A DNA stretch of 64,000 bases from Mobula hypostoma (Eukaryota): positions 11,904,001 to 11,968,000 of the forward strand of contig NC_086109.1 in the NCBI RefSeq assembly GCF_963921235.1. Reading direction: 5' to 3'. The notes under the pieces are model-generated. The model was not told where the DNA came from, did no database searches, and saw nothing but the letters and a program-made list of their open reading frames with translations. Shown one piece after another: positions 15 to 37,803 of this stretch. A program made the translations under genes and the position numbers. Position 1 is the first letter of the stretch; each line of letters opens with the position of its first letter.

Positions 15-263
15 CTAGTCCTGTGGAGTAGCAGGAGAGAAAGCTTTCTGTTTGGGCTTTGCGCAATGCGTTTGAAATTTGATATCTGCATAGGTGACGT
101 TGTCCACATCAGTAACGGTGTGGACTGCTCTTGATTTCCTTTTAAATTTCACATCTGCATACACAATTCCAGTTTCATTTCTGGCCGACTGGACAGCTGC
201 CTCATTGTTTCGAACATGGTGTAGTTCTGTATAAACGACATTTTCTTCCAACGTGGCCATTTC
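15..263 (-). CDS. Terminal coding exon of an inhibitory Ig receptor: cytoplasmic tail with three ITIM-type motifs
   Basis: Acceptor tttttttatttcag|GAA at 263 (phase 0). Reads EMATLEENVVYTEL...IVYADV...VTYADI...PQD, with stop TAG at 15-17. In frame with the 47-nt exon at 1960-2006. Confidence 0.88.
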   Translation of the reverse strand, partial: EMATLEENVVYTELHHVRNNEAAVQSARNETGIVYADVKFKRKSRAVHTVTDVDNVTYADIKFQTHCAKPKQKAFSPATPQD

Positions 264-1319
264 CTGAAATAAAAAAATAAATTCCGAGATCTATTTTATG
301 ACTGATGGATGTGAAAGTTGAGGGTGTGAAAAGCTACAGGGAGAAAGCAGCATAATAGGTGAGAGGGAAAATAAATCAACTGTGATTGAAGGACGGAGCA
401 GTCTTGATGGGCCAAATGGACTAATTCTGATCCTATACCATATGGTCTATGGTCTATGGTCTTAATTTCCGGATTATTTTTTTCATTATCTATTTTATGT
501 TTATAGCCCAAGTTCCACTCTCATCCATATGTGGAAACACCTTTATTCAATAAAACAATTTGATACTCTTTCAGGCAACTACCAGATCACCCTCAGTTTT
601 CTGTTTTTAAATAACCTGTGATCCTTTCAATCAGCTTGTAGAATTTCGTTTTCCAGAGTGTTTGATAACAGCTTAGTGAGGACCTAATACTAACTGTGCA
701 ACAACAGCATGTTGCTTTACAACACCAACACATGAAGTCGGTAGTTGGTGTTTCACAGGGGTTTACTGAGAGTAGAGGTTGAAAATAAACTTGGGAATTA
801 TTTGGGCAAATTACAATACTTTTAGGGTTTACAGTCATAATGGTTTGTTGTAGCAGGTTAATTGATCACATGGGTGTAATTGGCTGGTCTGTGGACTGGA
901 AGGACCGGTTACTCTGCTGTATCTCTAACAAACAGAAGTTAAGAGGACGGAATTGCAGGAGTTCATGGGGTTGAGTCCAGTGCGTGGGATTTGGGCAGCT
1001 GAAGCTACTGACATTGGTGGTGGGATTCAGAGACTGGAGGATGCACAAGAGGAACACACAGTTCTCTGAGGGTACAGATCTTGGAGAGAAAATGATGCCC
1101 TCAAGGGAAAATGTACAGCAGAGCAGAATCCTCCAACAATCTCCACCCTCCAGTTACCGTGCACGATGAAAATTGTGGATGGTATCACAAACAAAGACTG
1201 CTGATAACAGACCTAAGACTCAATAGACTATTCATACTGGTGTCAGGATTAAGGGGTAGCATGAGAAAGTGGGTGGGCGGGGTCAGCACAGAACAGATAT
1301 TTACTTATTTAGAGATACA

Positions 1320-1505
1320 GCATGGTAACAGGCCATTCTGGCCCAACAAGCTGCACTATCCAATTAAACCCATGTGACCAAATTAACATACTAACATTGG
1401 AATGTGGGAGGAAACCCACAAGGTCCCAGGGAGAACACGCAAACTCTTTACAGACAGCAACCGGAGTGATCCAGTTTGTTACGCAAACCGCTACACTACT
1501 GTGCC
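1320..1505 (-). mobile_element. V-SINE-like fragment
   Basis: Shares the central motif (ctggg..cc..gtgggtttcctcccaca.tccaa) with the SINE copies at 2060-2370 and 2570-2885. Boundaries approximate. Confidence 0.55.
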
Positions 1506-1959
1506 ATCCCCAATTTATTGTTCTGAATAGACCTGCCCCAATTTTTTCTGATTTCACTGCAGAGTTTGAGACGCTGAGGGACTATCCAAAAATTTAACTG
1601 AAAAGTCATTGAACACAAAGACAGATTTACATAATTGGACGTTCCATCTCTAACAGTAGAGGGAGGACCAACCCCACTTTTCACCATTCAGTGATGATAA
1701 CCAAGGCTGGAGCCACTTTGAAGAATAGTCACATAAAATATTATGAATAGAATTAAGGAAAATCAGGATGAGCAGAAGAGAAAGGAACAAATAACCAGAA
1801 GGATATGCCAATAGGATTCAATGAGAGGAGTGTTCGGAGGTTTGTGTAAAATATTAATACTGGACTGAACTAGTGCAGAAGAATGAACTGTAAACTCCCA
1901 TGTAATCCCATTTTTAAACATTCTGAAACATTCAGATAATTTACACTTCACGTCCATAC

Positions 1960-2006
1960 CTGGGTATCATTGTTGCCTTCTCCGTGAGATGTGTTGGGCT
2001 TGGATT
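1960..2006 (-). CDS. Short cytoplasmic exon of the Ig receptor (ESKPNTSHGEGNNDTQ)
   Basis: Acceptor gtattttccag|, donor CAG|gtatgg. The 47-nt exon runs phase 1 to phase 0 and bridges the TM exon and the ITIM exon in frame. Confidence 0.78.
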
Positions 2007-2059
2007 CTGGAAAATACAACATTACTGCTAAAAATTCCATGGCTGTTACAGACATAAAC

Positions 2060-2370
2060 ATTTATTTATTTATTGATCGATTGATACAGCACAGAGTCGG
2101 CCCCAGCAGCCTTTTGAGCTTCGCCACCCCAGTAACCCCTGACAAACCAGATTAACCCTATCCTAATCACGGGACAATTTCCATTGACCAATTCACCTAC
2201 CTGGTACGTCTTTGGACTGTGGGAGGAAACTGGAGGACCCAGAGTGTATCCATGCATCCCACAGGGAGGACATACAGAGACTCATTTCAGAACGGCACTG
2301 GAATTGAACTGCAAACTACGGAATGCCCCGAGCTGTAATAGCTTTACGTGAACCGCTAGGTTACCATGAC
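2060..2370 (-). mobile_element. tRNA-derived V-SINE (HE1-like)
   Basis: B-box-like GTTCAATTCC (2300-2309 on minus), V-domain-like core ggtcctccagtttcctcccacagtccaaagacgt, A-rich tail (tttattt on plus). Confidence 0.7.
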
Positions 2371-2569
2371 ACCCATACTGAATCTCAGAACCACGGGAAC
2401 CCCAGCTGCAACACAGTAATGATTCTCCACACAGAGCAAACCTCTGCTCTGGTTACTGCACGATGTTCAGAAAGGATCATGTTGTTGTATACCCCACCTG
2501 ATAATAACACACAGGTGATCATGATACTCACAGTTCGCTTCACTAGTTTACAAAGTCTATTTAAAAGAG

Positions 2570-2885
2570 AAGATTATTTCTTTATGGATTCATTTGGTGA
2601 TATACCACAGAGTAAGCCCTTCCAGCCCTTCGAGCCACACCGACACAGCAACCCCGACAAGTCTGATTAACCTGAACCTAATCATGGGACAATTTACAAT
2701 GACCAAATAACATACTTGGTGTGTCTTTGGACTGCGGGAAGAAATTGGAGCACCCTGGAAAAACCCACACATTCAATGGGGAGGACGTAGAGACCCTTTA
2801 CAGAATTTCACTGGAATTGACCTCTGAACTCCAAAATGCCCCGAGGAGTAATCACATCACACTAACCTCCACGTTACGGTGGTGC
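2570..2885 (-). mobile_element. Second V-SINE copy
   Basis: Aligns by eye with 2060-2370 (GTTCAATTCC, ccaatttcttcccgcagtccaaagac). Confidence 0.65.
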
Positions 2886-3090
2886 CCATCTCAGGATCAT
2901 CTCAATAAACCAGATCACTGACTTAATCTACGGCAACTTTTTGCAACCAAAGCAGGGTAATTTTGCCAGTGACATGCAGTGAGTGGTAGATTGGTAAAAG
3001 ATACACCTGATCTTTTTTTTAAGAATTACACAAGAGTACGATTTTAGACATACATTGTCCAAATGATTGCATTTAATTGGAGGTTGTACT

Positions 3091-9213: not shown

Positions 9214-9900
9214 GAGATTATGTGTCCTCATTCATCAGTCCTCGTTTCTTGTCATTTAGAAGTGCATGCATTAAAAAATGATACAATGTTCCTCTAGAAT
9301 GATATCACAAGAAACACTGGACAAAACCAAGACTAAAGCTGACAAAACCACATAATTATAACATATAGTTACAACAGTGCAAAGCAATACCGTAATTTGA
9401 TAAAGAGCAGACCATGGGCATGGTAAAAAAAAGTTTCAAAGTTCCGATAGCCTCATCATCTCACGCAGGTGGTAGAAAGGAAAAACTCTCCCTGCCATGA
9501 ACCTCCAAGCGCCGCGAACTTGCCGATGCAGCACTATTGGAAGCACCCGACCGCAGCCGAGTCTGAGTCCGTCCGAAAACTTCAAGCCTCCGACCAGCCC
9601 TCCGACACAGCCTCTCCGAGCACCATCCTCTGCCGAGCGCTTCGACCCCGCCCCGGCCGCCGAGCAACAAGCAACGTCGAGGACTCGGGGCCTTCTCCTC
9701 CGGAGCTGCTGGACCACACAGTAGCAGCAGCAGCAAAGCAGGCATTTCAGAAGTCTCACCAGATGTTCCACCGTGCTCTCACGTCCGTCTCCATCAAATC
9801 AGGATTGTGCATGTCACCCTATTTGACAAATATCAGACAACACCACCAGGGTGGCCAATGCGAGTTGCGTTGCGCCGCCATCTTCTCCTCCCTTATTCTC
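9214..9900 (-). mobile_element. Non-autonomous interspersed repeat starting GAAGATGGCGGCG
   Basis: Homologous by eye to 24790-25130 (tcctgatttgatggagac..cgtgaga..gaacatctgg...aatgcctgc). No credible coding ORF. Family unassigned. Confidence 0.6.
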
Positions 9901-9905
9901 CTCCC

Positions 9906-10880
9906 TGTTGTTCCCTTATTCAAGAAAGGAAGTAGAGATAGCCCAGGAAATTATACACCAGTGAGTCTTACTTCAGTGGTTGGTAAGTTGATGGAGAAGA
10001 TCCTGAGAGTCAAGATTTATGATCATTTGGAGAGGCATAATATGATTAGGAATAGTCAACATGGATTTGTCAAAGGTAGGTTGTGCCTTACGAGCCTGAT
10101 TGAATTTTTGGAGGATATGACTAAACACATTGATGAAGGTAAAGCAGTAGATGTAGTGTATATGGATTTCAGCAAGGCATTTGATAAGGTACCCCATGCA
10201 AGGCTTATTGAGAAAGTAAGGAGGCATGGGATCCAAGGGGACATTGCCTTGTGGACCCAGAACTGGCTTGCACACGGAAGGCAAAGAGTGGTTGTAGATG
10301 GGTCATATTCTGCATGGAGTTTAGTGACCTGTGGTGTGCCTCAGGGACCTGTTCTGGGACCCCTTCTGTTCATAATTTTTTAAATGACCTAGATGAGGAA
10401 ATGGAGAGATGGGTTAGTAAATTTGCTGATGACACAAAGGTTGGGGGTGTTGTGCATAGTGTGGAGGGCTGTCAGAGGCTACAGTGGGACATTGATAGGA
10501 TACAAAACTGGACTGAGAAGTGTCAGATGGAGTTCAACCCAGATAAGTGTGAGGTGGTTCATTTTGGTAGGTCAAATATGATAGCAGAATATAGCATTAA
10601 TGTAAGACTCTTGGCAGTGTGGAGGATCAGAGGGACCTTAGGGTCCAAGTCCATAGGACACTCAAAGCTGCTGCGCAGTTTGACTCTGTGGTTAAGAAGG
10701 CATACAGCATATTGGCCTTCATCAACCGTGGCATTGAGTTCAAGAGCTGAGAGGTATTGATACAGCTATACAGGACCCTGGTCAGAAACCACTTGAAGTA
10801 CTGTGCTCAGTTCTGGTCACCTCGCTACAGGAAAGATGTGGAAACTATAGAAAGGGTTCACAGGAGATTTACAAGGATTG
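9906..10880 (+). mobile_element. CR1 RT fragment
   Basis: VVPLFKKG, SQHGF, DFSKAFDKV, GVPQG and FADD motifs, with stops and frameshifts. Confidence 0.9.
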
Positions 10881-11794: not shown

Positions 11795-13812
11795 ACCATA
11801 GAACCATAGAAACTACAGCACAGAAACAGGCCTTTTGGCCCTTCTTGGCTGTGCCGAACCATTTTCTGCCTAGTCCCACTGACCTGCACACGGACCATAT
11901 CCCTCCATACACCTCCCATCCATGTATCTGTCCAATTTATTCTTAAATGTTAAAAAGGAACCCGCATTTACCACCTCGTCTGGCAGCTCATTCCATACTC
12001 CCACCACTCTCTGTGTGAAGAAGCCCCCCCTAATGTTCCCTTTAAACTTTTCCCCCCTCACCCTTAACCCATGTCCTCTGTTTTTTTTCTCCCCTTGCCT
12101 CAGTGGAAAAAGCCTGCTTGCATTCACTCTGTCTGTACCCATCATAATTTTATATACCTCTATCAAATCTCCCCTCATTCTTCTACGCTCCAGGGAATAA
12201 AGTCCTAACCTATTCAACCTTTCTCTGTAACTGAGTTTCTCAAGTCCCGGCAACATCCTTGTAAACCTTCTCTGCACTCTTTCAACCTTATTTATATCCT
12301 TCCTGTAATTTGGGGACCAAAACTGAACACAATATTCCAGATTCGGCCTCACCAATGCCGTATACAACCTCATCATAACATTCCAGCTTTTATACTCAAT
12401 ACTTCGATTAATAAAGGCCAATGTACCAAAAGCTCTCTTTACAACCCTATCTACCTGTGACGACACTCTTAGGGAATTTTGTATCTGTATTCCCAGATCC
12501 CACTGTTCCACTGCACTCCTCAGTGCCTTACCATTAACCCTGTATGTTCTACGTTGGTTTGTCCTTCCAACGTGCAATACCTCACACTTGTCAGTATTAA
12601 ACTCCATCTACCATTTTTCAGCCCATTTTTTCAGATGGTCCAAGTCCCTCTGCAGGCTCTGAAAACCTTCCTCACTGTCTACTACACCTCCAATCTTTGT
12701 ATCATCAGCAAACTTGCTGATCCAATTTACCACATTATCATCCAGATCATTGATATAGATGACAAATAACACCCAGCACTGATCCCTGTGGCACACCACT
12801 AGTCACAGGCCTCCACTCAGAGAAGCAATTCTCTACCACCACTCTCTGGCTTCTTCCATCGAGCCAATGTCTAATCCAATTTACCACCTCTCCATGTATA
12901 CCTAGCGACTGAATTTTCCTAACTAACCTCCCATGCGGGACCTTGTCAAAGGCCTTACTGAAGTCCATGTAGACAATATCCACTGCCTTCCCTTCATCCA
13001 CTTTCCTGGTAACCTCCTCGAAAAACTCCAACATTTGGTCAAACATGACCTACCACGCACAAAGCCATGTTGACTCTCCCTAATAAGCCCCTGTCTATGC
13101 AAATGCTTGTAGATTCTGTCTCTTAGTACTCCCTCCAATAACTTACCTACTACTGACGTTAAACTCACCGGCCTATAATTTCCCGGATTACTTTTCGATC
13201 CTTTTTTAAACAACAGAACACGTGAGCCACTCTCCAATCCTCCGGCACTTCACCCGTAGACAGCGACATTTTAAATATTTCTGCCAGGGCCCCCGCAATT
13301 TCAACACGAGTCTCCTTCAAGGTCCGAGGGAATACCCTGTCAGGTCCTGGGGATTTATCCACTTTAATTTTCCTCAAGACAGCAAGCACCTCCTCCTTTT
13401 CAATCTGTATAGTTTCCATGGTCTCACTACTTGATTCCCTCAATTCCATAGATTTCATGCCAGCTTCCTTAGTAAATACAGACGCAAAAAACCTGTTTAA
13501 GATCTCCCCCATTTCCTTTGGTTCCGCACAAAGCCGACCACTCTGATCTTCAAGAGGACCAATTTTATCCCTTACAATCCTTTTGCTCTTAATATACTTG
13601 TAAAAGCTCTTTGGATTATCCTTCACTTTGACTGCCAAGGCAACCTCATGTCTTCTTTTAGCCCTCCTGATTTCTTTCTTAAGTATTTTCTTGCACTTCT
13701 TATACTCCTCAAGCACCTGATTTACCCCTGTTTCCTATACATTTCATACAACTCCCTCTTCTTCTTTATCAGAGTTGCAATATCCCTTGAGAACCAAGGT
13801 TCCTTATTTCTA
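11795..13812 (-). mobile_element. 5'-truncated CR1 LINE (RT half)
   Basis: Minus ORFs 13165-13716, 12923-13237, 12747-13046, 12608-12799 and 11870-12607 carry CR1 RT motifs. The 3' tail is (ttctatgg)n. Confidence 0.93.
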
Positions 13813-14740: not shown

Positions 14741-15699
14741 ATGACTCTGCTGCATCCTCTCTAAACTGTAGCATACTTTTGAAAGGTTAAAATCAGAATT
14801 CTATTTCATTGCATTGGTGTGACAGCTTATTGGATCACAGCCAATCATACTGCAGTTCAATTTCAAAATTCAAAGTACATTTAATGACAAAGTATGAATA
14901 CTATATACAGCCTTCAGATTTTTTCTTTACAAGCAGCCGCGAAACAAAAAAAACTCTAGAATCCTTTAAAAACACTGTCAAACACAGAATGTGTAGTAAA
15001 CAAAAATAAATCAAGCAAAGAATAAAAGTAAGTAAATAAATTTGGAACTGAAATTCACAAATGTGAGTCCACAGCCATAAAGCCAATCATCACTGCAGCC
15101 AGTTAAGGAACCGTTAATTACAGGCTAACGGCTCAGTTCAGCACAGAAACTGGTAAACCTCGTGGAGCAGCAAACTGATGACTTGCCCATCCTTCGCATA
15201 GGACTGACCGTTTTACGTGAATTTTGAAAGCTTATTACCCTGTTCACAGCCATGAAATGCCGCAGCCTCGTTCATATCTGTACATAGACTCAAATAGAAG
15301 GTATGGGTTCCCTTCCCGTATCTCAAAGTGAGCGAGGTATTTTAATCAGCAACCTGAATCTCAGTTTAAGTAGTCAATGATTTACTTGGACTGCTCATGA
15401 AATTCTAAGGATAGTCATGACCATAAGACAATGGGACCATAAGACACAGGAACGGCATCAAACCATTTTGCCCATAGAGTCTGCCCCACCATTCCATCAA
15501 GGTTGAGTTATTATCCCACTCAATCCCATTCTCCTGATTTCTCCCCGTAATCTTTGATGCCTTTACTAAACACAAAACTCTCGTGCTCCATTTTCAATAA
15601 ACCCAAACAGTTAGCCTCAGAAGCCGGCTGTGGTAATTAATTCCACAGATTCAACACCCGCTGGCTAAATAAATTCTTCCTCATCTCCATTCTAATGAA

Positions 15700-15915
15700 T
15701 GGAGTCGGTACGTTGTACATGTGGAATGCGTGGTGTTTCCCCTGGGTGGTCCCGTTTCCTCCCACAGTCCACAGACAATTTGGAAAGATTAACTGGTCTT
15801 TGTTGATTGTCCTGTGATGATGATGTAGTTAATCGGGTTTGTCGAGGGTCGCTGGGCCTGTGTGGCTTGAAGGGCCAGAAGGACCTACTCTGCACTCTAA
15901 CAGTAAATAAATAAA
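15700..15915 (+). mobile_element. V-SINE fragment
   Basis: Core gtgtttcccctgggtggtcccgtttcctcccacagtcc and tail gaagggccagaaggacctactctgcact...aaataaataaa. Confidence 0.6.
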
Positions 15916-16080
15916 GGAAAGGATCATCCTTGCTTTCTGAGGATGATTTTTCAGACAAGATTTCCCCATATGGAAACCATATTTTATCAAATCCCTCTAA
16001 GTACCCCAAAATCTTGTTCTTAACAATGGACTCGGAGGTTGGAGCAAAGTCAAGATGGTGCTAAATGGCAATTGCTTTGA

Positions 16081-16622
16081 AACATGGAAACATAGAAAAC
16101 CTACAGCACAATACAGGCCCTTCGGCCCACAATACGGTGCTGAACGTGTACATATTTTAGAAATTACCTAGGGTTACATTTACCTATCTAGGAGTCTCTT
16201 AAAAGACCCTATCCACCACTGTCGCCAGCAGCCCATTCCACACACTCACTACTCTCTGCATAAAAGACTTACCCCTGACATCACTTCTGTACCTACTTCC
16301 AAGAAACTTAAAACTGTGCCCTCTTGTGTTAGCCATTTCAGCCCTGGGAAAAAACCTCTGACTATCCACACGATCAATGCCTGTCATCATCTTATACACC
16401 TCTATCAGGTCACCTCTCATCCTCCGCCACTCCAAGGAGAAAAGGCCGAGTTCATTCAACCTATTCTCATAGGGCATGCTCCCCAATCCAGGCAACATCC
16501 TTGTAATTCTCCTCTGCACACTTTCTATAGTTTCCACATCCTTCCTGTAGAGTGGTGACCAGAAATGAGCACAGTACTCCAAGTGGGGTCTGACCAGGGT
16601 CCTATATAGCTGTAACATTACC
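16081..16622 (-). mobile_element. CR1 3' fragment inserted in another repeat
   Basis: ORF 16199-16624 (RPHLEYC, RGDLIEVYK). Tail tttctatgtttc. Confidence 0.85.
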
Positions 16623-17946
16623 ACTTTGCTTGCATCTTTGGAAATGGTTCTATTCCTGTTTTTTATATATATATATTTTTTCCTTATTAAGGTTCTTTGG
16701 AAGACTCTGACTCCGGATATTTGCGGAAATGGGACCCACTATCAGGGCCTTATGATAGGCCGCTTTTTGATATCCCAAGGACGCGGCCTGGAAGACTAGC
16801 GTGTATTCAGGGTGCCGGATTTTTGTGTCTCTGGGGACATGCTGATTCTAGGCTGTTGCCCCTGACTGAGGCGTCACTGGAGAACATGGAGCATGGAACA
16901 TCGGGAGCAGTGGGTTAGCTGCCGGCTGTGTGTCCTGAGACCTGAGCCCTGGGGCCAACTCTCTGGGCACAGAGCTCAGAAAAGCGACGCAACAACCATT
17001 TAACATTATAAATCAATGAGTTGTTTGTTATGTGTCCCCTCTCGTTGAGATACAGGGACACCTCTTTTTCCCTTATGAGGGAGAGAGAGACCCTGTAGTA
17101 TATTGAATAACGCTGCGAACGAGTAGTCTTTGGGGTTCTGCAAGTCTGTGTCTTTATTGATGCTTTGCTGCATGTTTGAGTGCTCGGTGGAGGGTGCTGG
17201 TGCTTTTTTTGCTCATGTGGGAAGGAGAGGGGTCATTGCCGTGCTGCTGCTTGTGAATGGGAGGGAGGAGCTGGGGGGGGGCTTTGGGGTTCTAATGTTT
17301 AACTGTCATTCATTCTTTGGCTCACTCATCTGTTTTCGTGGATGTTTGCAAAGAAAAAGCTTGTTCTTAATAATGGACACCAACATCTTCCCAACCACTG
17401 ATGTCATGCTAACCGGTCTATAATTTCCTTCCTTTTGCCTCCCTTCCTTCTTAAAGAGTGGAGTGACACTTTCAAATTTCCAGTGCTCTGGAACATTCCA
17501 GAGTCTTGTTCTTCTTGAAAGTTCACCACTAATGCCTTCATAACCTTTTCAGCTATCTCTTTCAGAACGTTGGGGTGCAGTCTATCTGGTCCAGGTGATT
17601 TATCTACTTGCAGATCTGTCCTTCCTTTTCATTTTATGAGTGTCACAGTCTCACAACTCAATGCCTATTCTGGCCTTTTCAAAGCACAAGCCGGAAGTAT
17701 GAATGGAATTGTCTCAATTTGTCTGGAAGTGCAATTCCAACTATGTTTGAGAGGCTCCACACCTTCATCGAGGAAGTGACGGATCTGACTGTTCACTACA
17801 CTTTATTTCTACCCCAAGGTGTCTGCAAAGTGTAGCTTCTACAAATGCAAAGAAATACCGTACTCTCACTAGAAGTGTAAGAGCAGCAGTAACAGAGGAA
17901 CAAAAAGAAATATTTAAACGTATCCTCTCTTGAAAGGAGGACTTAC

Positions 17947-18267
17947 TAGTGCCATTGATTTCTGTCACGTAGCTGCAGATCTCTCCGTTGTTGAAGACTG
18001 TCACATCAACCATTGCACTGGATCTCGCTCCAATCCAATTCGAGGCACTACAGTAATATTGATGGTGCAGCTGTTTGAAGGATTGACAATGTAGAGCCAG
18101 TTTATTGGTATCTGAGATCTTCGGATGCCCAGATGAGGTTTGTTCATACCATGTGTACTGAATGGGAAGGGATCCCTGGAGAGACTCACAGGAAACTGAC
18201 ATTGAGCCCCCGAGACGGGAGACATTTGCCGATGACAGATATCGAAGCACAGGAACAGACACAGGAT
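17947..18267 (-). CDS. Second extracellular Ig domain exon (C2 / FcR-like type)
   Basis: Acceptor ttctttcccacag|AT, donor ACTA|gtaagt. 321 nt, phase 1-1. Motifs VSVPVL, SCES.QGSLPIQYTWY and YYCSASN. N-glycosylation sequons NVS and NGT. Confidence 0.9.
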
Positions 18268-18319
18268 CTGTGGGAAAGAATTAAACAATCAGACACTGAA
18301 TGAACATCTGAAAATCAAA

Positions 18320-18883
18320 CACTCTTCTGCCACTTTATTAGACACACCTGTTCACCTGCTCATTAATCCAAATATCTAATTGGTCAATCATGTGGCAGCA
18401 ATACAGTCCATTTAAGCATGCAGACAGAGTCAAGAAGTTCTGTCTCTGTTTAGGCCGGACATCAGAATGAGGAAGAAAGGTGATCTAATGTGACTTTGAC
18501 CATGAAATATTTGTTGGGGGCCAGATGGTGTAGTTGGATAATCTCAGAAACTACTGATCTTCTGGGGTTTTCACCCACAACGGTTTCTAGAGGTTACAGA
18601 GAATGGTGTGAACAACATAAATAAAACATCCAGTGAGCAGCAATTCTGTGAACAAAAATACCTTGTTAATGAGAGAGGTCAGAGGAGAAAGACCAGACTG
18701 GTTCAAGCTGACAGAAACTGACAGGAATTCAAATAACCGTGTGTTATGACAGTGGTGCGCTGAAGAGCATCTGAAAATACAACATATTGAACCTTGAAGT
18801 GGATGGGCCACAGAAGCAGAAGACCAGGAACATCCAATCATTGGCCACTTTATTAGGTATAGGAGGTACCAAATAAAGTGGCC
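18320..18883 (+). mobile_element. Internally deleted Tc1-family element (MITE-like)
   Basis: Inverted ends ccactttatta / aataaagtggcc. Decayed transposase N-terminus from 18467 (MRKKGDL...ISETTDLLGFS). Lies in the V-C2 intron. Confidence 0.75.
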
Positions 18884-19261
18884 CCTTCTTGTTTAAAGAC
18901 AGTGATGTGAGATATCTGTCACATGTTTGGTGTTTTTCAGGAGAAAACGATATTGTGACTGGGTTTATGTGAGGGATGGACAGGATGGGGACAAAGATCA
19001 GGAGACATTTACTTTACTTGTAGATGTAAATTAAATCTCCTATTGAAAACTGGTCTTATAATTCCACAGTAATGTGAGATATCTGTTTGGTGGCTTTCAG
19101 GAGATAATTAATTTGTGACTGGGTTCAATGACCTACCATAAAGAAGTGAACATTTGGCACTGATGTGAATGCAGAGATAGTGAGGCATTGACAATGCTTG
19201 GATAAAGATCAAGAGACACTTACTTTATGGAAGGCACAAAGTCAATCCCTGAGAAACCTAC

Positions 19262-19582
19262 CATCAGATACTTGTAGATGTACACTAGATCTCGTATCGA
19301 CACCTGCTGTTGTAATTCCACAGCTGTACCACCTTGTATCTCCAGAGCGAAGATCCTCCGTAGTAACAGTAAATATTCTCCGTTCTGGGTTATCTGTGAT
19401 TGACACTCGTCCTTTCCGTCTGTGTTGCCCATTTGTTTCCACTACAACTGAACATTGGTGAATCCATCCATCGCACCAATACTTTGTGTGTGAGCGGTAC
19501 TTTTCTTCATAGTGACAATCGACTGTGATCGCTCTTCCGACGACTTCTCTTACATATTTCTCTGCCCACAATGCACCTGAAA
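19262..19582 (-). CDS. N-terminal V-type Ig domain exon, CD300/pIgR/TREM-like
   Basis: Acceptor tctccctcag|TT, donor GATG|gtaggt. 321 nt, phase 1-1. Motifs DCHY, KYWC, QC, GRVSITD and WYSC. The four-Cys pattern with the extra C-C' pair is typical of CD300/pIgR. Confidence 0.93.
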
Positions 19583-20937
19583 CTGAGGGAGACATTTTCA
19601 GATTTGACAGGAACAATTCAATGCAAACAAATATTTTTGAACATGATGGTAAAAACATATCCAGGTCACATCCAACACATGTGGTCCATGACACCACAGC
19701 CAATAATTTTGGTCTGAAGTGCGGTCAGTGCTGTTACTGTGTCAGCTGTGTCAGTGCTCTCTCCCCTGTGTCAGTACATTGTGGGTTCACTTCCCACTCC
19801 AGAGTCCTGAGCAGAAACCCAGGGCTGACCTTCTAGTGCAGTACTGAGGGAGAGCAGCAGTATTGAACTTTCCACTTACTTCAGAATATTTCAGCCTTTG
19901 AAATGTCGACAAAGATCCCAGCTGTTTCATTTGGGATGCATCTGCGTCTCAGATTTCAGGGAACTCCAGGATTCAGATGGGGTTGATGGGATCTCTTGAG
20001 GTGAATGTCCTGACTTCCTCCCCACTTACAGACGAATTTATAAACTGCAGAAAGAAACCCTTCATAATGCCCGAAACTGTGCCTTCTGATTCCAAAGGAA
20101 ATATTATATTTTGTACCTGTCAAATACTTGTATGTGCAGTTAGAAGGTGCTGCAACAAAGGTTGTTACTTTAGTATGCAGAAATCCAGTTTGATTTCAAA
20201 TTCTGTAAAAATATATTGTATGTTTTGATCAAATTTATTAATTATATCTGGAATTAAAAACCACATATTGATAATAATAATGACGAATTGCCAGATTGCA
20301 GAATTCCATCTGGATCAGAAAGTCCTTGAAGGAGAGAAATCTTTCATCCCTACCCACCCTAGTTTACCTTGGACTCCAGTTCCAGTAATGTTCTTTACTG
20401 ATTGCCCCACTGACCCAGGAAAGACAATGATTTCAAGACAATAAAGTCGATTGTCATAGTGATTCTTACAGAGGAAGATCAGATTCCAGCAATGGAAGAC
20501 CTGATGTTTCCACTTAACAGCCTCAAGAGGACTTCTTCAGCTGGATGTATTCTTCCCTCACCTGCACGACTCCCCTTTTCTCCTGATCTGTTTCAACCTC
20601 TCACCAGCCTCCAAAGGCCACCCCTTTTCTTCCCCATTCCATTTGCATGTTGTGCTTCACCTCTCCTCAGTCCTGAACCACCTAATGGACCCAGTCTCAC
20701 ACCTCCTCCTGTCCTATTTACTTTATCTCATTCTCCACTCACACTTGATGCAGGGTCTCGATCCAAACCCTTGACATTTCCCCTCCCCTTGACAGGTGCT
20801 GCTTGACCCGTTGAATTCCGAACTCCAGTTTCTGACGTCTTTAGTGTTGACGGGTATTTGAGCATTGTTGTGGGAATGGTGTACAACTCTCAAACCAACA
20901 TTGATTTTGCAAATATCCAGAGCTGTCTGTAAATCAC

Positions 20938-20977
20938 AGGGGAGGAAACCAATCCAAACAAGCAAAGTCCACAGCAT
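20938..20977 (-). CDS. Possible alternative signal-peptide exon (MLWTLLVWIGFLP)
   Basis: ATG at 20977, 13 hydrophobic codons plus 1 nt, phase 1. The donor T|gtgatt is weak. Confidence 0.25.
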
Positions 20978-21029
20978 TTTATTCACAGAGACCCAGCCAG
21001 GAACTGTCTGTCCTCAAAAGATGACCAGG

Positions 21030-22045
21030 CAGCATCTATGGAACAGAGAATAGTCGACGTTTTGGGCCAAGACCCTTCATCAGGACTGAAGAAAAAGGAT
21101 GAGGAATCAGAGATAAAAGTTGGGGTGAGGGGAGGAAGAAACACAAGATGATAGGTGAAACTGGGGGAGGGGGGATGTGTGAAATGAAGAGCTGGGAAGT
21201 TGTTTGGTGAAACCTATACAGGGCTGGAGAAGGGAGATTCTAATAGGAGATGATAGAAGGCCATGGAAGAAAAAAAGGGGGAAGAGCACCAGAGGGAGGT
21301 GATGGGCAGGTAAGGAGATAAGGTGAGAAGGGAAAGGGGAATTGGGAATGGTGAAAGGGGCAGGGCAATACTGGAAGCTGGAGAAATCGATGTTCATACC
21401 ATCAAGTTGGAGGCCACATAGATGGATTATAAAAGTGTTGTTCCTCTAATCTATGTGTAGCCTAATTACGACAGTGGAGGACGCCATTGATTGACGTGTC
21501 AGAATGAGAATGGGAAGTGGAAGTAAAACGGGCGGCCACTGGGATATCCCACTTTTTCTGCCAGACGGAGTATAGGTGCTCGGCGAGGCAGTCTCCCAAC
21601 CTATGTCAGGTCACCCCAATATACAGGAGGCTGCACCTGGAGCACCGGATTCAGTTGATGGCCCCAACAGATTCACAGGTAACGTGTTGCCTTACTTGGA
21701 AGGGCTGTTTGGGGCCCTGAATGGTGGTGAAGGAGGAACTGCAGGGGCAGGTGAGGCGTTTGTTCTTCTTGCAAGGATAAGTGCCAGGAGGGAGATCAGT
21801 GGAGGGGGATGGATGGACAAGGGAGTTACGTAGGAAGCGGTTGCTGTGGATAGCAGAAAGTGGGGGAGAGGGAAAGATGTGCATGGTGGTGAGATCCCAC
21901 CGGAGGTGGTGGAAGTTACAGAGACCTCTGTGCTGGACATGGAAGCTGGTGGGTGGTAAGCCTTGAGTCTCCACGTCCAGCACATAATTCTTCAGAACTT
22001 CTGACATCTCCAATGGGATCCCACCACTGGGCACATATTGCCTCC
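21030..22045 (-). mobile_element. Degenerate Penelope-like element (GIY-YIG end and 3' repeat)
   Basis: Homologous to 49530-50400 (QGPKQPFQVRQHVTCES). Mutated hammerhead at 21052-21087. Confidence 0.8.
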
Positions 22046-25500: not shown

Positions 25501-28428
25501 CTCTTTCCTTTTTCTTCTGAGCTGACTACTTTATGAGTTTACCCCTAATAACAGCTTTTGCAGCATCCCACAGAGTGCTGGGGGACACTGTTCCTTATCA
25601 TTATATATCATATAATCTTCAAACTCTTTTTTTAGGTATTTTAAACATAGGGGTTCATTCAAAAGACTGGTATTAAGTCCCACCAGGTACCTTTGCATTT
25701 GTTGTCCAAATGTAATGTTAAGTAAACCCCTGTCTGGTCAGCGTTGTCTCTTACCCCTATATCGCATTTTATAATCCTTTGTCTCTCTGAATTGAACATA
25801 AAAAAATTAATTCTTGAGCACACGGAGTGGGTGTGAGAAAAAAAGGTGAATGGTTTATCAAGTGGGTGTAACTCACTCCATATATCTATCATGCCTATTT
25901 CTTTGAGCAGTTTCTTGACGTGTAATGTTTCTGGGTTTATCTTTTTTGTTCTATTTGAGGAGCCCAGGGAAGGATGTAATTGAATATTCCAGTTCCCCCC
26001 ACATATTACCACACCAGATGTTTCCATAGATATCATATTAAAAACCATCTTAATCAACTGTTTATCATTTTCTGGTGGTCCGTAAACATTCAGTAGTGTA
26101 ACTTCTTTATGATCAATAAAAACCTTCACCAGTAAATAACACCCTTCTTTGTCTGTAATCTGCAAGGAAAACTGGAAATTTACTTTATTTGAGATTAATA
26201 TTGCAACTCCCCTTGTATTTCCCCTCTCAAAAGAAGAGTAAGAACAATTTTTAAATCTCATTTTGCGTAACTTCTCATGTTCAATCTTTGAAAGGTGAGT
26301 TTCTTGCCAAAAAATTATATCTTGGTTTTCTCTCTTCATTTTAGCTATAGCCTTACTCCTTTTGATTGGGTTCTGTAACCCATTCATATTAAGGGTGATT
26401 ACTCTGTATTCTTGTTATGGCATTCCACACCAATAAAAAAAGGGTTTATATAAATAGTTAAATATCCCTAGATGACCTAAACAAATGAACTTCTGTCTGT
26501 ACAACACACTAACATTTAACATATAAGCAAGACATATAACATCTGTGACTTCCATCCTTGAAGTTTAAACTAAACTTCTAAGTCAGGGGTGGAGGGGGAG
26601 CCCTTAAACCCGAAGGGGCCCCTCCTAGTGCAGGTTGATGCCTCTGAGTAATTGAAATCAGGACTGTGTACAAACAAAAACAGAGTCAAACATCAGCTCC
26701 CAGGTTTGTGGTCAGTTATAGTAATAAGAGCTTACAGAGGAAAGATTGTTTATGTTCTATTTTTAAGTTCTTAATACAAAGTCAATTATAGTTTGGTGTT
26801 AAGGTACATCAAGTCAAGTCAAGTCATCACTTTTTATTGTCACTTCAACCATAACTGCTCGTACAAAACATAGTAAAAATGAGACAATGTTTTCTAGGAC
26901 CATGGTACTACATGAAACAACACAAAAACTACACTGAACTATGTAAGAAAAAACACAAAAACTACACTAGACTACAGACCTATCCAGGACTGCATAAAGT
27001 GCACAAAACAGTGCAGGCACTACAATAAATAATAATTAATAATAAACAAGACAGTAGGTGCCTTTTTCCAGGTGGCAGGAGGGAGAAGAGTTTATACGAG
27101 GGGTGCGTGGGGTCCTTCATAATGCTGTTTGCTTTGCGGATGCAGCGTGTGGTGTAAATGTCTGTGATGGTGGGAAGAGAGACCCCAATAATCTTCTCAG
27201 CTGACCGACCTGGCTGATGGATATTTCATCACTATACCTTTAAGAGCTCTCATGCAGTATCTTTGTTGCGTTGAAATTCCTTTAGCTTGTCCTGGATGCT
27301 TTTCAGATGTGTTTCTCGGTCCCAGCGGGATTTTGTAGAAGCTGCCTCCCAGGAAAGTTGTCTCAGTTTCGCGTGGCCGTGCCTTCCGCAGAAGCCACGA
27401 TTCAGGGACAGTCCAGGAAAAATTCCTCTGTTCTTCAAGTCTTCTGTCACCTCCGATGCGTTATTGCAGATGACTTGTCCAGTGTCAAAAAACACTTGAA
27501 GTTTGGCTGGGTAAAGAGTCTGGAACCGGAGCCCCTTTTCTTTAAGCGTCTTTCTGATGGTGGAGCAAGCTTTTCTTTTCATAAGTATTTCGGTCGGGTA
27601 GCCTTGATCAAAAAATACTCTTTTCCTGTCATAATAAATCTCTCGTTTTTCCCAAGCAGAGCGAAGCACCAACTCTTTAATTTTATACTCCAGAAAGTAG
27701 ATGACCACGGACCTTGGGTTGGAACCTTGTGGTGGTTTGAATCCAAGAGATCGATGGCAGTGTTGTATGCCGAGGGCGGCATCGGGAAGGAACAATTCTA
27801 TTTTAATAATTTTTTTCCAGGAACTCCTGTATGTTGTCTCTTTCCACCCACTCGGAATTTCCGTCCATATGTATGTTATTCCTCCGTGAACGCACCTCCA
27901 GGTCCGTTAGTTAAGCTTGAATGATCTCCTGAAGTTCCAGTGTGTGGAAATGAACCTCCCTGGCTTCAGCATTCCATTCCTCCACTTCTGCCATCCTTTG
28001 CTCCATATCCTCAAATCTACCCATTATTTCTTTTAAATCACCAACAATAGCATTCAGCTTCTGGTTAATTTCTTCTCTGAAAATCCACCAGTTTCTTCTT
28101 CAGAAAACCCAAAGTATCACTCAGTTCTTTTTTCATGTCCGACCGAAGCGTCTCTATTTCGGCCATGATGTTATTAAGAACAGCCTCCATATCCTTGTGT
28201 TCAGCTTGATTGCTCGAGCCGTCGTCAGTGTCCTCGCTGTCAGTCGGTATTTTATCCCTTTTCTTTGGGTTTTGTTGCGGTTTTCCTCGTCTTTCTTTTG
28301 TTTCCCCCTTTCATGCTACAGGACACACTTTTCTATTTAAATAACCGTTCATTATTTAGGGGGAAATAAGACCATCTGGGAGCCCTTACTGATTATGCTA
28401 CTGGCTGTATCTACGCCATACCGGAAGT
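22535..28428 (-). mobile_element. L1/Tx1-clade LINE, near full length, degenerate
   Basis: 5' end ACTTCCGG. ORF1 remnants 27250-28310 (HRSLG, VFFD, FQTLYPAKL), endonuclease 25659-26387 (NGLQNPIKR, QETH), RT 24389-24835 and 23691-24422 (SLDAEKAFD, GCRQGCPLSP, YADD). Confidence 0.92.
24790..25130 (+). mobile_element. Second copy (5' part) of the GAAGATGGCGGCG repeat, inside the L1
   Basis: Homology to 9214-9900. Sits at a junction where part of L1 ORF2 is missing. Confidence 0.6.
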
Positions 28429-32400: not shown

Positions 32401-34839
32401 CAATATTTCATGATAATCCAGTTCTGAAAAAGTGTCTCCGCCTAAAACCTTAACTGCTTTTTCCTTTCCATAGATACTGCATGACTGGCTGAATTCCATC
32501 AGCATTTTTTGTCTGTTGCTCTGGGTTTCCAGCATCTATAGATTCTCTTGGGTTTGTAAATCTACCTTATCACTGTTTACCTGGTTAGAACTTTAGATGT
32601 TATTCGAAGTGGGATCTATCCAGTTTGTGCTGTGTGATTCTCTGCAGCAGATAAAATCCCAGTACAAGGGATAACAGTTGCCATGAATTTACACATATTG
32701 GAGAAGTAATGCATTCCGTCTAACTGTTGCATGATGATTTCATTGTAGTGTGAAAGCTGATGTGATCTGAAAAATAGTTTATTTATATTCACTCAAAACT
32801 TGAGGGCAATGTCAAAGTACTATATATGCAGAAAATGTTAAACCCCAAAATAATCCTCACACTTTTTGGTTTCGTAATTTAGCAAAAAAGAAAACTGACA
32901 TATGTAACCAGAATTTCCTGTCAATAAAAATAACCAGTTTCACTTCTGTTTTTCTGGTCAGGATCATAGAATTTACAACGTAGGAGGCTGTTCAGCCCTC
33001 TATTCAGTACTGGTCGAAAAAGCACTCAATGTTTTGGTCTTCCCTGGGTCCTCTGCCTGGCAGGTGACGGCTCTTCAAATACACCTTCCAGGCTCTGTTT
33101 TTGTGCTGAAGGTTCCTGCCTCTACAAACCCTTCAGGAAGTGAGATCCAGAATTGCACCACTTCCTCACTTCTCGGTGGATTGTCACCTTGTCATGTTGG
33201 AGAGACTTGTGAGTGATGTTGTCCAGGGGGTAGCTCCTGGTCTGGTCTCCGTTGGTGGAAAATTCAATGGGGGGTTCCAGACAACAAGGGATCCAAGTAA
33301 GACCTCAAAGGTGCAACTAATGGAAGATGATGACATCACAACGGCAGAGATGGCGGAGGAAGGCAGCAGCAGTGAAGGGTCCATCAGTCATCTTGTATTC
33401 CATGATATTGGACCCAAACCGAAATCTGTCAAGGACCAAGTTGTGGCTGCCCATGCATCAGCCTCCCTACATTAAACAAGATCCTGCACAGGTGTCCTCC
33501 ATTAAGGAAATCCACCATATCATGTCAGATTGACACAGCAAGTGGTGTAGGGGTCAGAATTGTGATGATGTGGATCTTACAGCCACCTGAGGACCCACCA
33601 ATAGACATACATGAGTCGAGTGATTATGTTACTACTACCGCTCCCTGGGAGAAAAGTGTTCTCCTCATTCCCCCTCTAATCCTAACAACAGTTAACTTTT
33701 AACCCAGGACCCCTATTTTTAACACCTCATCTAAGTGATCACAATTATTCGTGTTCAAACTTTTGATGCTCTTTATAATTTTTCACAAGTCAATTAAGTC
33801 TCCTCTTTGCCTCTTTAGTTTCAGACAAATTAACCCCAGCCAATCCAATCAATCCAATGGGTGAAGCACTCATTCCCAGGCAGCAGTCTCCCCAATGCAT
33901 TCTTGTCTTTCTGGTAATGTGGTGACCACAAATGACCACAGTGTTCAAGCCATGGGCATAACCACACTTCCCCTATATCCTTGGAATGTGCATATCAAGG
34001 AAGCTGTTTTGTCTGCCTTTCTAATCACCTTATCTACATCTTCAGTCACACTCAATGATCAGTGATCAAACTCAACAAGGTCCAACATCATCCTCACATT
34101 CCTCAATATCCTTGTATTTGCTTATCCATTAATACACTGGTGGTGGGGTGGAGATTCCTCTCCACCAAAGGAAGTGTAAGAAGCGCCTTACCTCTGGTAC
34201 CCTGTGGAGGTCACCCCTGGGCAAGGTGTAGCACCTGCTCAGTAACCCTCAGTCAGGGTCACGTGAAGCCATGGGAGCTGGTGGTAGATGGTCATATCAG
34301 CAGCTGGAGCATATCATGAATCCTGATTCTGCAACCACTGACATCAGTCAGACAAACTCTGGATGGGGCGTGACTGCATTCGGATATCACGCAAGTGTGG
34401 AGAGAGAGGGAGAGGGAGAGAAGGTGAGAGGAAGAGAGAGGGGAGGGAACGGGGAGAGAGAGAGAGAGAGAGCGATTGAAAGATTATCTGCCTCATTGCT
34501 TCAGTCGCTTCACACAGAAGAGAGTCAATCACCTGTAGCTTGTCCCCTGCCTGACCAATGAAGCTCAGGGCCAAGATCAGCTGTTTTTACTCTCTGCTGG
34601 ATCTCACTTTGGTGGTCTGAGACTTGCTGTCACGATGTTCGAATATGGCCAAAGTGCAGAGAGAGAGAGAGACACTGAAGCAGGTCAATAGTTCACAGAC
34701 TTTAACACAAACAGGATTTGAAGGGAAAAGTAAACAATAAACATGAGGCCAAACAGCGCCATTTACTGAAACTCTCAAAAGGAAAACTAGATGCCAACTC
34801 CACGGCTGAAAGGAATATCTAAATATAAAACGAATATTG

Positions 34840-35600
34840 CTCATCTCCAGCATCAGTCAACTGAATACTCCACTTTCTCAAGCAAGGCCCACCAAACTCT
34901 GGACATGTTTATATGTAGACTGCACAGGTCCATTGGACAGTCGGATGCTACTGGTTGTCATCGATGCGCTTTCTAAATGGAATGATGCCAAAGCGGTGAT
35001 GACATGGACTAGAATCCTCGATACTGTAATCTATGATAATGATCCCACGTTTACAAGTGAGGAATTCAAATTATTTTTTACAGGACAATGGAATTTGATC
35101 GCAACAACCCCCCCCCCCCCCGTCACCCATCATCAAACGGTATGACTGAGAGAGCTGTTCAGACTGTCAAGCAGGGGATACAAAAGTTGAATGGGGACAT
35201 ACACAACAGGATGAACAGTTTTTTTCAGGTACCTGATAACTTCACAAACCACCAGAGGTTTCATCTGAGCTAGTGATGGGCCACTGATGCATTCCCAATT
35301 GGATTTATTGTGCCTTGAGCCGGAAAACCAAGTAAGACACAGACAACAGAAAGGAAGTGCGGTACGATTCAAAAACAGAACATCGGAACTTTGAGGCAGG
35401 AGAGCCAGTTTATGCTCACCCAAATCCTGAGAGCTGAATGTGGATGAAAGGAGAAGTCATGGTGAAAGAGGGCCAGTAGGTTACTTCAGCGCTTGAGGAT
35501 GGTAGTGTATGCCATCGACATCTAGACCACATCAGGAAACAGAAAGTATATCCATTGTTGCCGAACAAGTTGGTGAACAAGACCAGTTAGCCCCAACAGG
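34840..35600 (+). mobile_element. Gypsy/Ty3 integrase relic
   Basis: Decayed core: LYVDCTGP..MLLVVIDALSKW, DNDPTFTSEEF, HPSSNGMTERAVQTVKQG. Confidence 0.8.
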
Positions 35601-36223
35601 TTAACCCCACAACCTATCAAAGTGGAATTCCCATTTGAAAGCACCGAATCTGGACCAACACTCAATCCTGTAGTTTCTGGATTGCGTAGATCAGAACGGA
35701 CCAGAAAACCAGTGAAATATTATTAGGCTGGTTTCCCCTAAAATCTTACAGGTGGGGAGGTGTCCTATCCACTGAGCTACTGTTTATTGGTTTGTCATGA
35801 GACATCACGGGATTGGCCAATTTCATCAGCTTGTCCAGCTATCAATTAAAGTTTGACCAACTGATTCCGTGCTTGTGAACGTGTTCGGTGTTTCTCGGTG
35901 ACTATGAATCAAGCAGATTTATTCTGCGACACTGTGTATAATAAATGTTCTTTCATTGTAAGAGACTGTGGATGATGAGGGAGAGGGTGAGGAAAGAGAG
36001 TGATCAGACTGTAAGAAGCTTGAGACATTTTCTTCCCTGCGCCACTCAGTTACTGGGTTGTCAACTCAAATAGCTAAATTAATCAGGTTATCCAGACTAT
36101 TCTGCTTGTCACGATGTTCTGCTGGACCCCTGCGTTCAGTCTATGTTGGAAGGCAGTGATGAGAGATCTCTTATTCCATCTCGTCTCTTCTGCAAGTGTG
36201 CTAAACATTTTCTAAATTATTTC

Positions 36224-36916
36224 TGTAGCCTCCCCCCGGCCACCCTCAGGGTCGCTCGGCTCGCTGTCGTCTAGGGAAACAGCCTCGGCCCCGGCAAACT
36301 GGGTAATTCGTTTGTGTGGATGCTGTGTGAGGTACCCCACCCCGCCCAAATAACAGACAATACACCAGATGCAATAAATAATATACAGTTTATAGATATT
36401 ACTGTTACTATATAATTAAGAGAGAATAAAATATAAAAGGAAAATAAAAGGCGCCACTTTTATCAAAGTTCAATCTCTTCGTGCACAAAACCCGTTGGAG
36501 CTCAAGGACCTTCTTCTTCACCCTGCGACCCCCTCGGACCACCTCCACCGGGCGCTTGGGATCAACAACGGTGGTCGACCAGACGCTCCACACGAGTCCG
36601 TCTCCGTCTCCTCGCCGAACGTCCCGCTCGGGGTCCGACCCCGTTAGCGGACTCACAGCACCTCGTCCATCCTCTGTCTCGCTCTCCCGCCTTCTGCCAC
36701 AAACCCCCCGCATACAGTATCTTCAAATACACCAAAACCATAACAACTATCCCAATTGGTTAACGCACTCTCTTATCACCCTCTTAAAAAAAACAAGCTA
36801 CTACCGTAAACTTTCTCAGCGTTTAACACAACAAAGCCACATTCCCCAGATTAACATTACAAAGACGCCATTTTAATTAGCCTCCGCAGTAACATAAAAG
36901 TCGGAACCCCCTTACA
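36224..36916 (-). mobile_element. Solo LTR (693 bp) with 4-bp TSD TTTC
   Basis: TG...CA termini, TTTC at 36220-36223 and 36917-36920. Strand is inferred, not certain. Confidence 0.75.
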
Positions 36917-37766
36917 TTTCCAATAATACTGGATGCTGATGAGTAAAACAAATGTTCACAGTTTGAGGAATAGAACGGGAAGGAAATGGATTCTGAGTGC
37001 AAGTTAGCCCTCAACCCACACAGAACTGAAGAACAAGATATTTCAATAACAGGAACAGCTGTCTATCAGAGATTAACTTACTTTTCATGTATATTTTCTA
37101 TGCTGATTTTAGTGAGTACAAGGCAGCATGAAAATGATGTTTCATGGATGGAAAGGATGCCTTTGTACTTACATCTGCAAACTTCTGCAAATTAATGTTC
37201 CCTGGGCAGCAACACTCTCTGCCAAGATTATTCAGAACACTGGTGCAAGAGACCAAGGTGTGTCCTCAGCTCCCTTCTCTCCTCCCTGCACACTCACAAC
37301 TGCAGGTTGGGTATTGTTTCTTTCTCCCCCCCCCCCACCCCCAGCCCTGATACAGGGTCTCCAACTGGAACACCTTTTGCCTCTATAGATGCTGCTGGAC
37401 CCATACAATTCTTCCAGCATCGTGTCAATGGTTCCACACCCCAATACTGTTGAACTTATTTATGGAGCATTTTCTGTCTCTACATATTTGCACATACTTT
37501 CCCATCTCTGCTACAGAAATGGTGCACTAGACCCAAATTGACACTGATCATTTGAATGAACAAGTAAACTGCAGATGTTGGAAATTTGAGACAAAAACAG
37601 AACGTGCTGGAAATACTGCGTATGTCAGGCTGAATCTCTGGGAAGTGAAACAGAGTCAAAGGGTCTTGGGTCTAAAACTTTCACTGTTTCCTTTTCTATG
37701 GGTACAGCCTGACCTGCTGAGTATTTCCTGCATTCTCTGTAACATCCCACGCAAGTTGTCACTCAC

Positions 37767-37803
37767 CGGGCAGTGAACAGATGAAAAGAACCAGAATCCA
37801 CAT
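37767..37803 (-). CDS. Signal-peptide exon (MWILVLFICSLP|V) of the Ig receptor
   Basis: ATG at 37803, 12 codons plus G, strong donor CCG|gtgagt. Splicing to 19582 gives MWILVLFICSLPVSGALWAEK. Absent from the ORF track. Confidence 0.85.

Follow-up and report, generated by a model that had tools for sequence, protein, structure and literature searches.

Positions 11,904,001 to 11,968,000 of contig NC_086109.1 (assembly GCF_963921235.1) of the devil ray Mobula hypostoma, a stretch of 64,000 nucleotides analysed here in full and referred to as the window, carry on their minus strand a copy of the modular domain immune-type receptor (MDIR) gene family of cartilaginous fish. On balance, we consider that this is an inhibitory-type MDIR that has been crippled by loss of the exon for its membrane-proximal stalk, and that it is likely to be young and decaying. 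The exons for the leader, the immunoglobulin (Ig) V and C2 domains, the transmembrane (TM) segment and a cytoplasmic tail with three immunoreceptor tyrosine-based inhibitory motifs (ITIMs) are all in place. What is missing is the one exon that would bring the ectodomain exons and the signalling exons into the same reading frame.

In cartilaginous fish, MDIRs are the equivalent of the CD300/pIgR/TREM group. They combine a CD300/pIgR-type N-terminal V domain with FCRL-like C2 domains, and they end either in an uncharged TM segment followed by an ITIM tail (inhibitory type) or in an arginine-bearing TM segment followed by a short tail (activating type). We know of no functional study of MDIRs since 2006. 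Individual family proteins are referred to below by the P-number labels used in this analysis.

Exon structure of the locus

A preliminary description of this stretch, made from its letters alone, had proposed six minus-strand exons. All six are present, with canonical AG/GT sites and the phases originally assigned to them, and the junction coordinates 37767, 19582 and 18267 are exact (Table 1). As a set, the exons are far beyond what chance would produce, judging by the homologous proteins that align to every one of them, and their order and strand suggest a single transcription unit. No additional family V, C2, stalk or TM exon was found elsewhere in the 64-kb window, whose sole run of N (54374-54679) lies outside the gene.

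Leader L1, which alone is too short for statistical significance, resembles the leaders of relatives such as MRILILLICSLP of P0037. Its donor scores 6.3 bits in a weight matrix, and the codon formed at its junction with the V exon, G+TT, encodes Val, the same residue as in almost all relatives (..LPVSGALW). The 47-nt cytoplasmic exon aligns with ESKSNTHHRGKANGTQ of P0043 and with SKHNISHRGGNNETQ of P0015. In the V domain, Arg replaces the family Gly of the motif D-T-G-W-Y-S-C. The TM segment is uncharged and the tail holds three ITIMs, as in inhibitory members; the exons for both are out of frame with those of the ectodomain. The introns are packed with remnants of long interspersed nuclear element (LINE) endonucleases and reverse transcriptases: a reverse-transcriptase domain occupies 9469-10383, inside the intron between the C2 and TM exons, and further open reading frames (ORFs) in the same intron, at 11870-13716 and 16199-16624, are reverse-transcriptase-like to judge by their translations.

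Table 1. Features of the MDIR locus, in window coordinates and in the order of transcription.
Feature	Position	Strand	Description
Leader L1, coding part	37803-37767	minus	ATG at 37803; M-W-I-L-V-L-F-I-C-S-L-P + 1 base, phase 1; donor CCCG|GTGAGT
Leader-like exon L2, alternative or decayed	20977-20938	minus	M-L-W-T-L-L-V-W-I-G-F-L-P + 1 base; donor CCCT|GTGATT
IgV exon	19582-19262	minus	321 nt, phase 1 to 1; acceptor ...ctccctcag, donor GATG|GTAGGT
V-exon 3'-end relic	19092-19015	minus	within V-C2 intron; ..CGIIRPVFNRRFNLHLQV then gtaaag
IgC2 exon	18267-17947	minus	321 nt, phase 1 to 1; acceptor ...tttcccacag, donor ACTA|GTAAGT
Intron C2 to TM	17946-6737	minus	11.2 kb; expected place of stalk exon; LINE remnants
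TM exon	6736-6645	minus	92 nt; phase 2 in, phase 1 out; uncharged hydrophobic core ..YIIVLSIIGILLILLVVCLLCYL-KRKNR (hydropathy scan)
47-nt cytoplasmic exon	2006-1960	minus	E-S-K-P-N-T-S-H-G-E-G-N-N-D-T-Q, phase 1 to 0
Cytoplasmic tail exon	263-15	minus	ITIMs VVYTEL, IVYADV, VTYADI; stop TAG 17-15; 3' untranslated region continues beyond window edge

The missing stalk exon and its consequence for the reading frame

The phase clash between the C2 and TM exons, already noticed in the preliminary description, is genuine: the C2 exon leaves one base and the TM exon needs two. In almost every full-length relative checked, the last Ig exon is followed by a stalk exon before the TM exon is reached, and a stalk joins the last Ig domain to the TM segment in all of the closest relatives of the window copy (P0206, P0237 and P0015). 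About 30 family members share the stalk motif G-P/R-x-Y/H-x-C-E, usually in the form G-P-x-Y/H-x-C-E; variants include GSNHFSEN.. in P0237 and a non-canonical stalk of 19 residues in P0172. To bridge the phase 1 left by the Ig exons and the phase 2 required by the TM exon, a stalk exon must have a length of 3n+1, and it is the only exon of the family that shifts phase 1 to phase 2.

Such an exon was found in the window neither by a regular expression for the stalk motif, nor by tblastn with eight full proteins and seven stalks, nor by a family hidden Markov model (HMM) run against all six frames. In Smith-Waterman alignments with the window, neither stalks of the P0172 type nor those of the three closest Mobula proteins outscored shuffled queries. 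An ab initio scan of the C2-TM intron for AG..GT exons of the right phase returned none at normal stringency; when relaxed, it gave 16 weak candidates, which fall mainly in regions with ORFs of LINE type. Two stalk candidates were considered and turned down. The stretch 10841-10791 (PHLSCSEVTRTEHSTSS; HMM E 0.71) runs antisense to a LINE reverse-transcriptase remnant and was rejected as a chance match, and 10002-9972 (31 nt, RSSPSTYQPLN) is weak and lies within a LINE. In the architecture first put forward, leader-IgV-IgC2-[stalk]-TM-tail, every other module stands, and the bracketed stalk is absent from the whole window by all searches.

Spliced directly to the TM exon, the C2 exon reads T-T-L-T-stop, giving a 230-residue leader-V-C2 product that ends inside the TM exon. 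The six exons do not encode the full-length inhibitory receptor that had been assembled from them. The sole alternative donor that would restore the frame is a second GT, which moves the exon end by 4 nt to 17943 and has a score of -8.9 bits, the normal C2 donor having 3.3.

RNA from relatives of the locus

Contigs of four RNA-like runs, whose tissues are not stated, were compared with positions 15101-21100 (6000 letters) only; the indexed runs cover small shares of this stretch. Contigs from relatives of the window copy, 85-96% identical to it, stop precisely at the borders of V and no more than a few bases from those of C2. Those on the V exon span 19262-19583, the extra base being the G common to the leader end and the acceptor, and those on the C2 exon span 17950-18188 and 18065-18265. 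One contig joint, 18263>19262, corresponds to removal of the V-C2 intron in relatives, while another, 19553>17947 with 29 letters between, links the C2 donor with the beginning of another V exon, one of the SGALWAEDK type. All told, the runs contain spliced RNA of relatives that use the exon borders proposed here. No contig of the window copy was found in the four runs: all or nearly all of the listed contigs on its exons differ from it, the nearest piece being 96% alike. For the chain of junctions from 37767 through 19582 to 18267, which had been proposed as the splice check, the V-C2 joint is present in relatives' contigs and no contig comes from the window copy itself.

Several observations concern RNA and sequence outside the exons. 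The frame of the C2 exon stays open for 60 codons past its donor (17947-17768, minus strand). In one run, a contig of about 86% identity covers 17770-17976 and a second contig, of about 84% identity, covers 19084-19266; a relative therefore produces some RNA that is unspliced or retains introns. The 60 open codons were also considered as a relic of an activating-type TM segment. The resemblance between IKCSEQSDP and KKRSDQSDP reaches only E 0.02-0.07, and in a search with a profile of 21 activating TM segments the region was not among the top-listed matches, the best E anywhere being 0.58, so this idea was rejected. The same profile, run in six frames, identified no activating-type TM in the window. 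At 18301-18900, 16101-16700 and 20901-21100, contigs pile up to very high depth in each of the four runs, which marks these stretches as abundant, transcribed repeat families.

A crippled copy or a working receptor

Two parts of this interpretation are inferred, namely how exons were deleted and that the locus no longer works. The exon for the membrane-proximal stalk would have gone from the window copy, and probably with it a second V-C2 unit still present in the closest paralogues. In P0206, a V, a C2 and a stalk module lie between the C2 and TM modules that match those of the window, and deletion of those three exons would yield the window locus exactly. Without the stalk exon, C2-to-TM splicing would shift the frame into a stop after four codons. 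The loss of the phase-changing exon would therefore strand the TM and ITIM exons, leaving a locus that could produce no more than a secreted V-C2 fragment of 230 residues, made from a message likely to be a target of nonsense-mediated decay. The absence of the stalk argues against an intact MDIR member, not against descent from the family.

Several points weigh against this interpretation. All six exons have open frames and canonical splice sites, and the three ITIMs are preserved. In an old pseudogene these would decay, and the intactness of the exons therefore means either that the stalk was lost recently or that the exons remain in use. Since stalks are short and vary, as the 19 non-canonical residues of P0172 illustrate, a non-homologous stalk exon could escape the searches. 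The missing RNA of the window copy is weak evidence, since contigs drop rare transcripts.

The same observations can be turned into an alternative, in which the locus encodes a working full-length inhibitory MDIR after all. In this case the frame would be restored either by an unseen, non-homologous stalk exon in the 11-kb intron or by the second GT at 17943. With the +4 nt donor, which is correct in phase, the junction would read ..INGT-S-N-HTYIIVL.., and the resulting V-C2-TM receptor would recruit SHP phosphatases through its three ITIMs. The intact exons, splice sites and ITIMs all favour such a receptor, and P0172 of Hemitrygon akajei shows that short, non-canonical stalks exist in the family. 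However, the +4 donor, besides its poor score, sits within the GTAAGT of the normal donor, the ab initio scan of the intron offered no exon with acceptable sites and only its 16 weak ones, which lie mostly in LINE-type ORF regions, and neither a contig in the four runs nor an annotated protein corresponding to the window copy was found. We regard a working receptor as unlikely, and continue to favour a copy disabled by loss of its stalk exon.

If this is so, the locus illustrates a consequence of how MDIR genes are built. The phase 1-1 design of their exons means that Ig modules can be lost harmlessly, whereas loss of the phase-changing stalk exon would strand an intact inhibitory signalling end. 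This distinction is useful for the annotation of MDIR clusters and for telling working receptors from fresh pseudogenes.

Family membership and domain identity

The proposal that the locus belongs to an MDIR-like family has been borne out. Its V-C2 unit is 64.4% identical over approximately 208 residues to clearnose skate MDIR2 (ABC86796.1), and the part from TM to tail is 41% identical. ABC86796.1 is the accession cited for MDIR2 in PMC3031540. MDIR2 was retrieved using a relative 76% identical to the window copy as the query, and MDIR3 and MDIR5 of clearnose skate are also in the family match list. Like the window copy, MDIR2 has a leader, of the same type (MWIPILVVCSLPVSGAVW), a CD300/pIgR-type V domain, a C2 domain, an uncharged TM segment and a tail with tyrosine motifs; it differs in its stalk of about 40 residues (..ASGYSCGTSTTETM..), which the window copy lacks, and in its longer, diverged tail. 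On these alignments, we assign the window locus to the cartilaginous-fish MDIR multigene family as one of its copies.

Relatives of the individual exons are numerous. A search with the V part returned ray proteins 65-76% identical to it, named 'CMRF35-like molecule' or 'pIgR-like', several of which combine a V domain with Ig_3. An exhaustive search with the C2 domain gave 374 proteins at E <=0.001, 29 of them below 1e-30, and 80 V-C2 units were counted in family proteins. Named relatives come from Hemitrygon, Mobula, Hypanus, Pristis, Rhinoraja, Leucoraja, Heptranchias, Mustelus, Scyliorhinus and Callorhinchus. Against the proteins of relatives, the V exon is 72-83% identical, and to ray proteins 76-83%, with P0208 and P0179 nearest, and the C2 exon reaches 93% to P0206 of M. 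hypostoma and 91% to P0014 of M. birostris. In the TM exon, 29 of the 30 residues are identical to those of P0237 of M. hypostoma. When the TM, 47-nt and tail exons are translated as one, identity to the end of P0206 is 87% and to that of P0015 from H. akajei 76%; the corresponding values for the tail exon alone are 88% and 74%.

The order leader-V-C2-stalk-TM-16 residues-ITIM tail is found complete in P0043 (Rhinoraja, 409 aa), P0037 (Heptranchias, 418 aa), P0172 and P0165. The last two, XP_072886819.1 (P0172, 371 aa) and XP_072886823.1 (P0165, 376 aa) of H. akajei, have exactly the architecture that had been proposed for the window copy, and they are 76% identical to it in V-C2 and 70% in the C-terminal part; unlike the window copy, they possess an in-frame stalk of 19 to 24 residues. 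The nearest sequences are two M. hypostoma proteins called 'polymeric immunoglobulin receptor-like': P0206, of 948 aa, and P0237, of 479 aa. They share the exon modules and three ITIMs of the window copy and add further V and C2 modules and a stalk (GPIHFCENTVTES.. or GSNHFSENTVTK..), where the window copy passes from its first C2 straight to the TM exon, out of frame. The architecture can hardly be called hidden, as it had been in the preliminary description, for RefSeq already predicts dozens of V+C2 relatives in rays, sharks and a chimaera under misleading names (CMRF35-like, pIgR-like, FCRL5-like). The window copy itself is not among the annotated proteins, of 84-1045 residues, found in the family searches. 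Both the MDIR family and, in RefSeq, its V+C2 design were known beforehand; what is new is one devil-ray copy, and the window locus leaves existing knowledge of the family unchanged.

Comparison of the single domains with CD300, pIgR, FCRL and MDIR sequences, which had been suggested as a check, gives a consistent picture: the V domain matches CD300 and pIgR, the C2 domain FCRL5, and the V-C2 unit as a whole MDIR2. The V exon matches Pfam V-set (E 7.8e-11). Among PDB chains, phmmer matches it to CLM-1/CD300LF (7e-18), to CD300A (2e-16) and to domain 1 of pIgR (best single domain 1.2e-9), and structures of NKp44 and TREM2 match as well. The second Cys pair of the CD300/pIgR/TREM group (K-Y-W-C...C) is present in the V exon and aligns with that of pIgR. 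The C2 exon matches FCRL5 in the PDB with E 7.5e-32 across six domains, the best single domain giving 1.3e-4; titin, CAR, VSIG4 and CD22 follow, and in Pfam the exon falls slightly under the cut-offs of Ig_3 and Ig_C17orf99. By these matches the V domain is of the pIgR/CD300 type and the C2 domain is FCRL5-like.

None of the mammalian receptors has the combination seen here. Mammalian CD300 proteins consist of a single V domain without a C2 domain, and the CD300 chains matched by the V exon are single V domains of 110-126 residues. Members such as CD300A and CD300LF/CLM-1 resemble the window copy in the V domain with its extra C-C' disulfide, and the inhibitory ones in their ITIM tails, but the window V exon is followed by a phase-compatible C2 exon and so departs from the single-V ectodomain. 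pIgR has several domains, all of V type, and a long tail without an ITIM, whereas the window copy has one V, one C2 and three ITIMs. FCRL proteins contain only C2-type domains and no CD300-type V; in the window copy, only the C2 exon is FCRL5-like. The likeness to pIgR and to FCRL5 is confined to the level of single domains.

A parallel in Hypanus sabinus and the case for a soluble form

Products resembling the one predicted for the window are modelled in another stingray. The X1 and X2 isoforms of Hypanus sabinus 'CMRF35-like molecule 7' (XP_059806129 and XP_059806130; P0203 and P0002) are V-C2 products without an in-frame TM segment, 76-77% identical to the window copy in V and in C2 each. 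Over 20 residues, the C-terminus of X2 is 65% identical to the shifted frame of the window TM exon; this frame stays open for about 22 codons in X2 and meets a stop after 4 in the window copy. RefSeq models of this kind, which are automatic predictions, indicate that stalk-less messages occur elsewhere in the family, either as noise or as a soluble form.

This raises the question of whether the stalk-less form is itself functional, with the locus kept for a secreted V-C2 decoy or opsonin and the shifted TM exon contributing only a stop codon. The H. sabinus isoforms, lacking an in-frame TM and in the case of X2 using the same shifted reading of the TM exon, would fit, and carp SITR, soluble two-Ig relatives of CD300/MDIR, provide a precedent (PMC3031540). 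On the other hand, the stop precedes the last exon by two exon junctions, a position that normally triggers nonsense-mediated decay, and an intact ITIM tail would be left without selection. There is again no contig of the window copy among the four runs, and the H. sabinus evidence consists of automatic models. A functional soluble product seems to us quite unlikely. A broader version of the idea is more doubtful still: stalk skipping or loss might be a recurrent, used switch in stingray and devil-ray MDIRs, turning a membrane-bound inhibitory receptor into a secreted V-C2 decoy. The frame-shifted TM exon would then act as a terminator, and the window locus and H. sabinus X2 would be two instances of it, a proposal that we offer as very speculative.

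A second leader, a V-exon relic and the integrity of the locus

The original list of six exons stands, but it overlooked a homologous second leader, L2, which lies 1.36 kb upstream of the V exon. L2 with its 5' flank matches P0004 with 58% identity over 24 residues (tblastn, E 1.7e-5), and it also matches the leaders and 5' flanks of P0003 and P0016. Its donor has T instead of G at both -1 and +5 and scores approximately -1 bit when scored by hand with the same matrix, against 6.3 for L1, and the L2-to-V junction codon would be Phe, as opposed to Val in almost all relatives. On these features L1 is more likely than L2 to be the working leader, and L2 may be the ancestral leader of the V exon, now decaying.

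The V-C2 intron also holds a partial duplicate of the 3' end of a V exon and the beginning of its intron. This relic matches P0037, P0016, P0024 and P0004 at 48-56% over 18-27 residues, each match being weak (tblastn), and the intron start that follows it resembles that after the true V exon.

Two leader exons and a V-exon relic are among the features expected if the locus were not one gene but two unrelated MDIR remnants, one comprising the leaders, V and C2 and the other the TM, 47-nt and tail exons, brought together from different copies by transposon-driven rearrangement. The 11 kb of LINE remnants that separate these fragments are in keeping with this, as is the fact that the nearest relatives differ by part (P0208 and P0179 for V, P0206 for C2 and tail, and P0237 for TM). 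Against it, the fragments share a strand, their order is correct, and the 64 kb hold no further Ig, stalk or TM exons. Mosaic similarity is moreover usual in this modular family, and P0206 itself unites the same C2 and tail types. We therefore hold the joining of two remnants to be decidedly improbable, and a single copy that has lost its stalk exon remains the reading we prefer.

Observations on gene models and repeats

Some annotated relatives appear to carry errors at their starts. At 19220-19432 (minus strand), a shifted frame of the V exon matches the beginning of M. birostris P0014, named 'Fc receptor-like protein 5' (MDGVDECQSQITRN.. against MGNTDGKDECQSQITQN..), and the RefSeq model of P0014 probably begins inside a V exon in the wrong frame. 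The ORF at 27250-27795 (minus strand) has no Pfam match, is probably transposon-derived (..FFDTGQVICNNASEVTEDLKNRGIFPG..) and resembles the N-terminus of M. hypostoma P0206, whose model appears, from this resemblance, to start in a similar repeat copy.

Esterase-like ORFs paired with an endonuclease ORF are typical of fish CR1/L2-type elements. A LINE of this organisation occupies 60454-63006 on the plus strand, its first ORF containing a GDSL/SGNH esterase-like domain (E 1.7e-12) and an endonuclease ORF following it.

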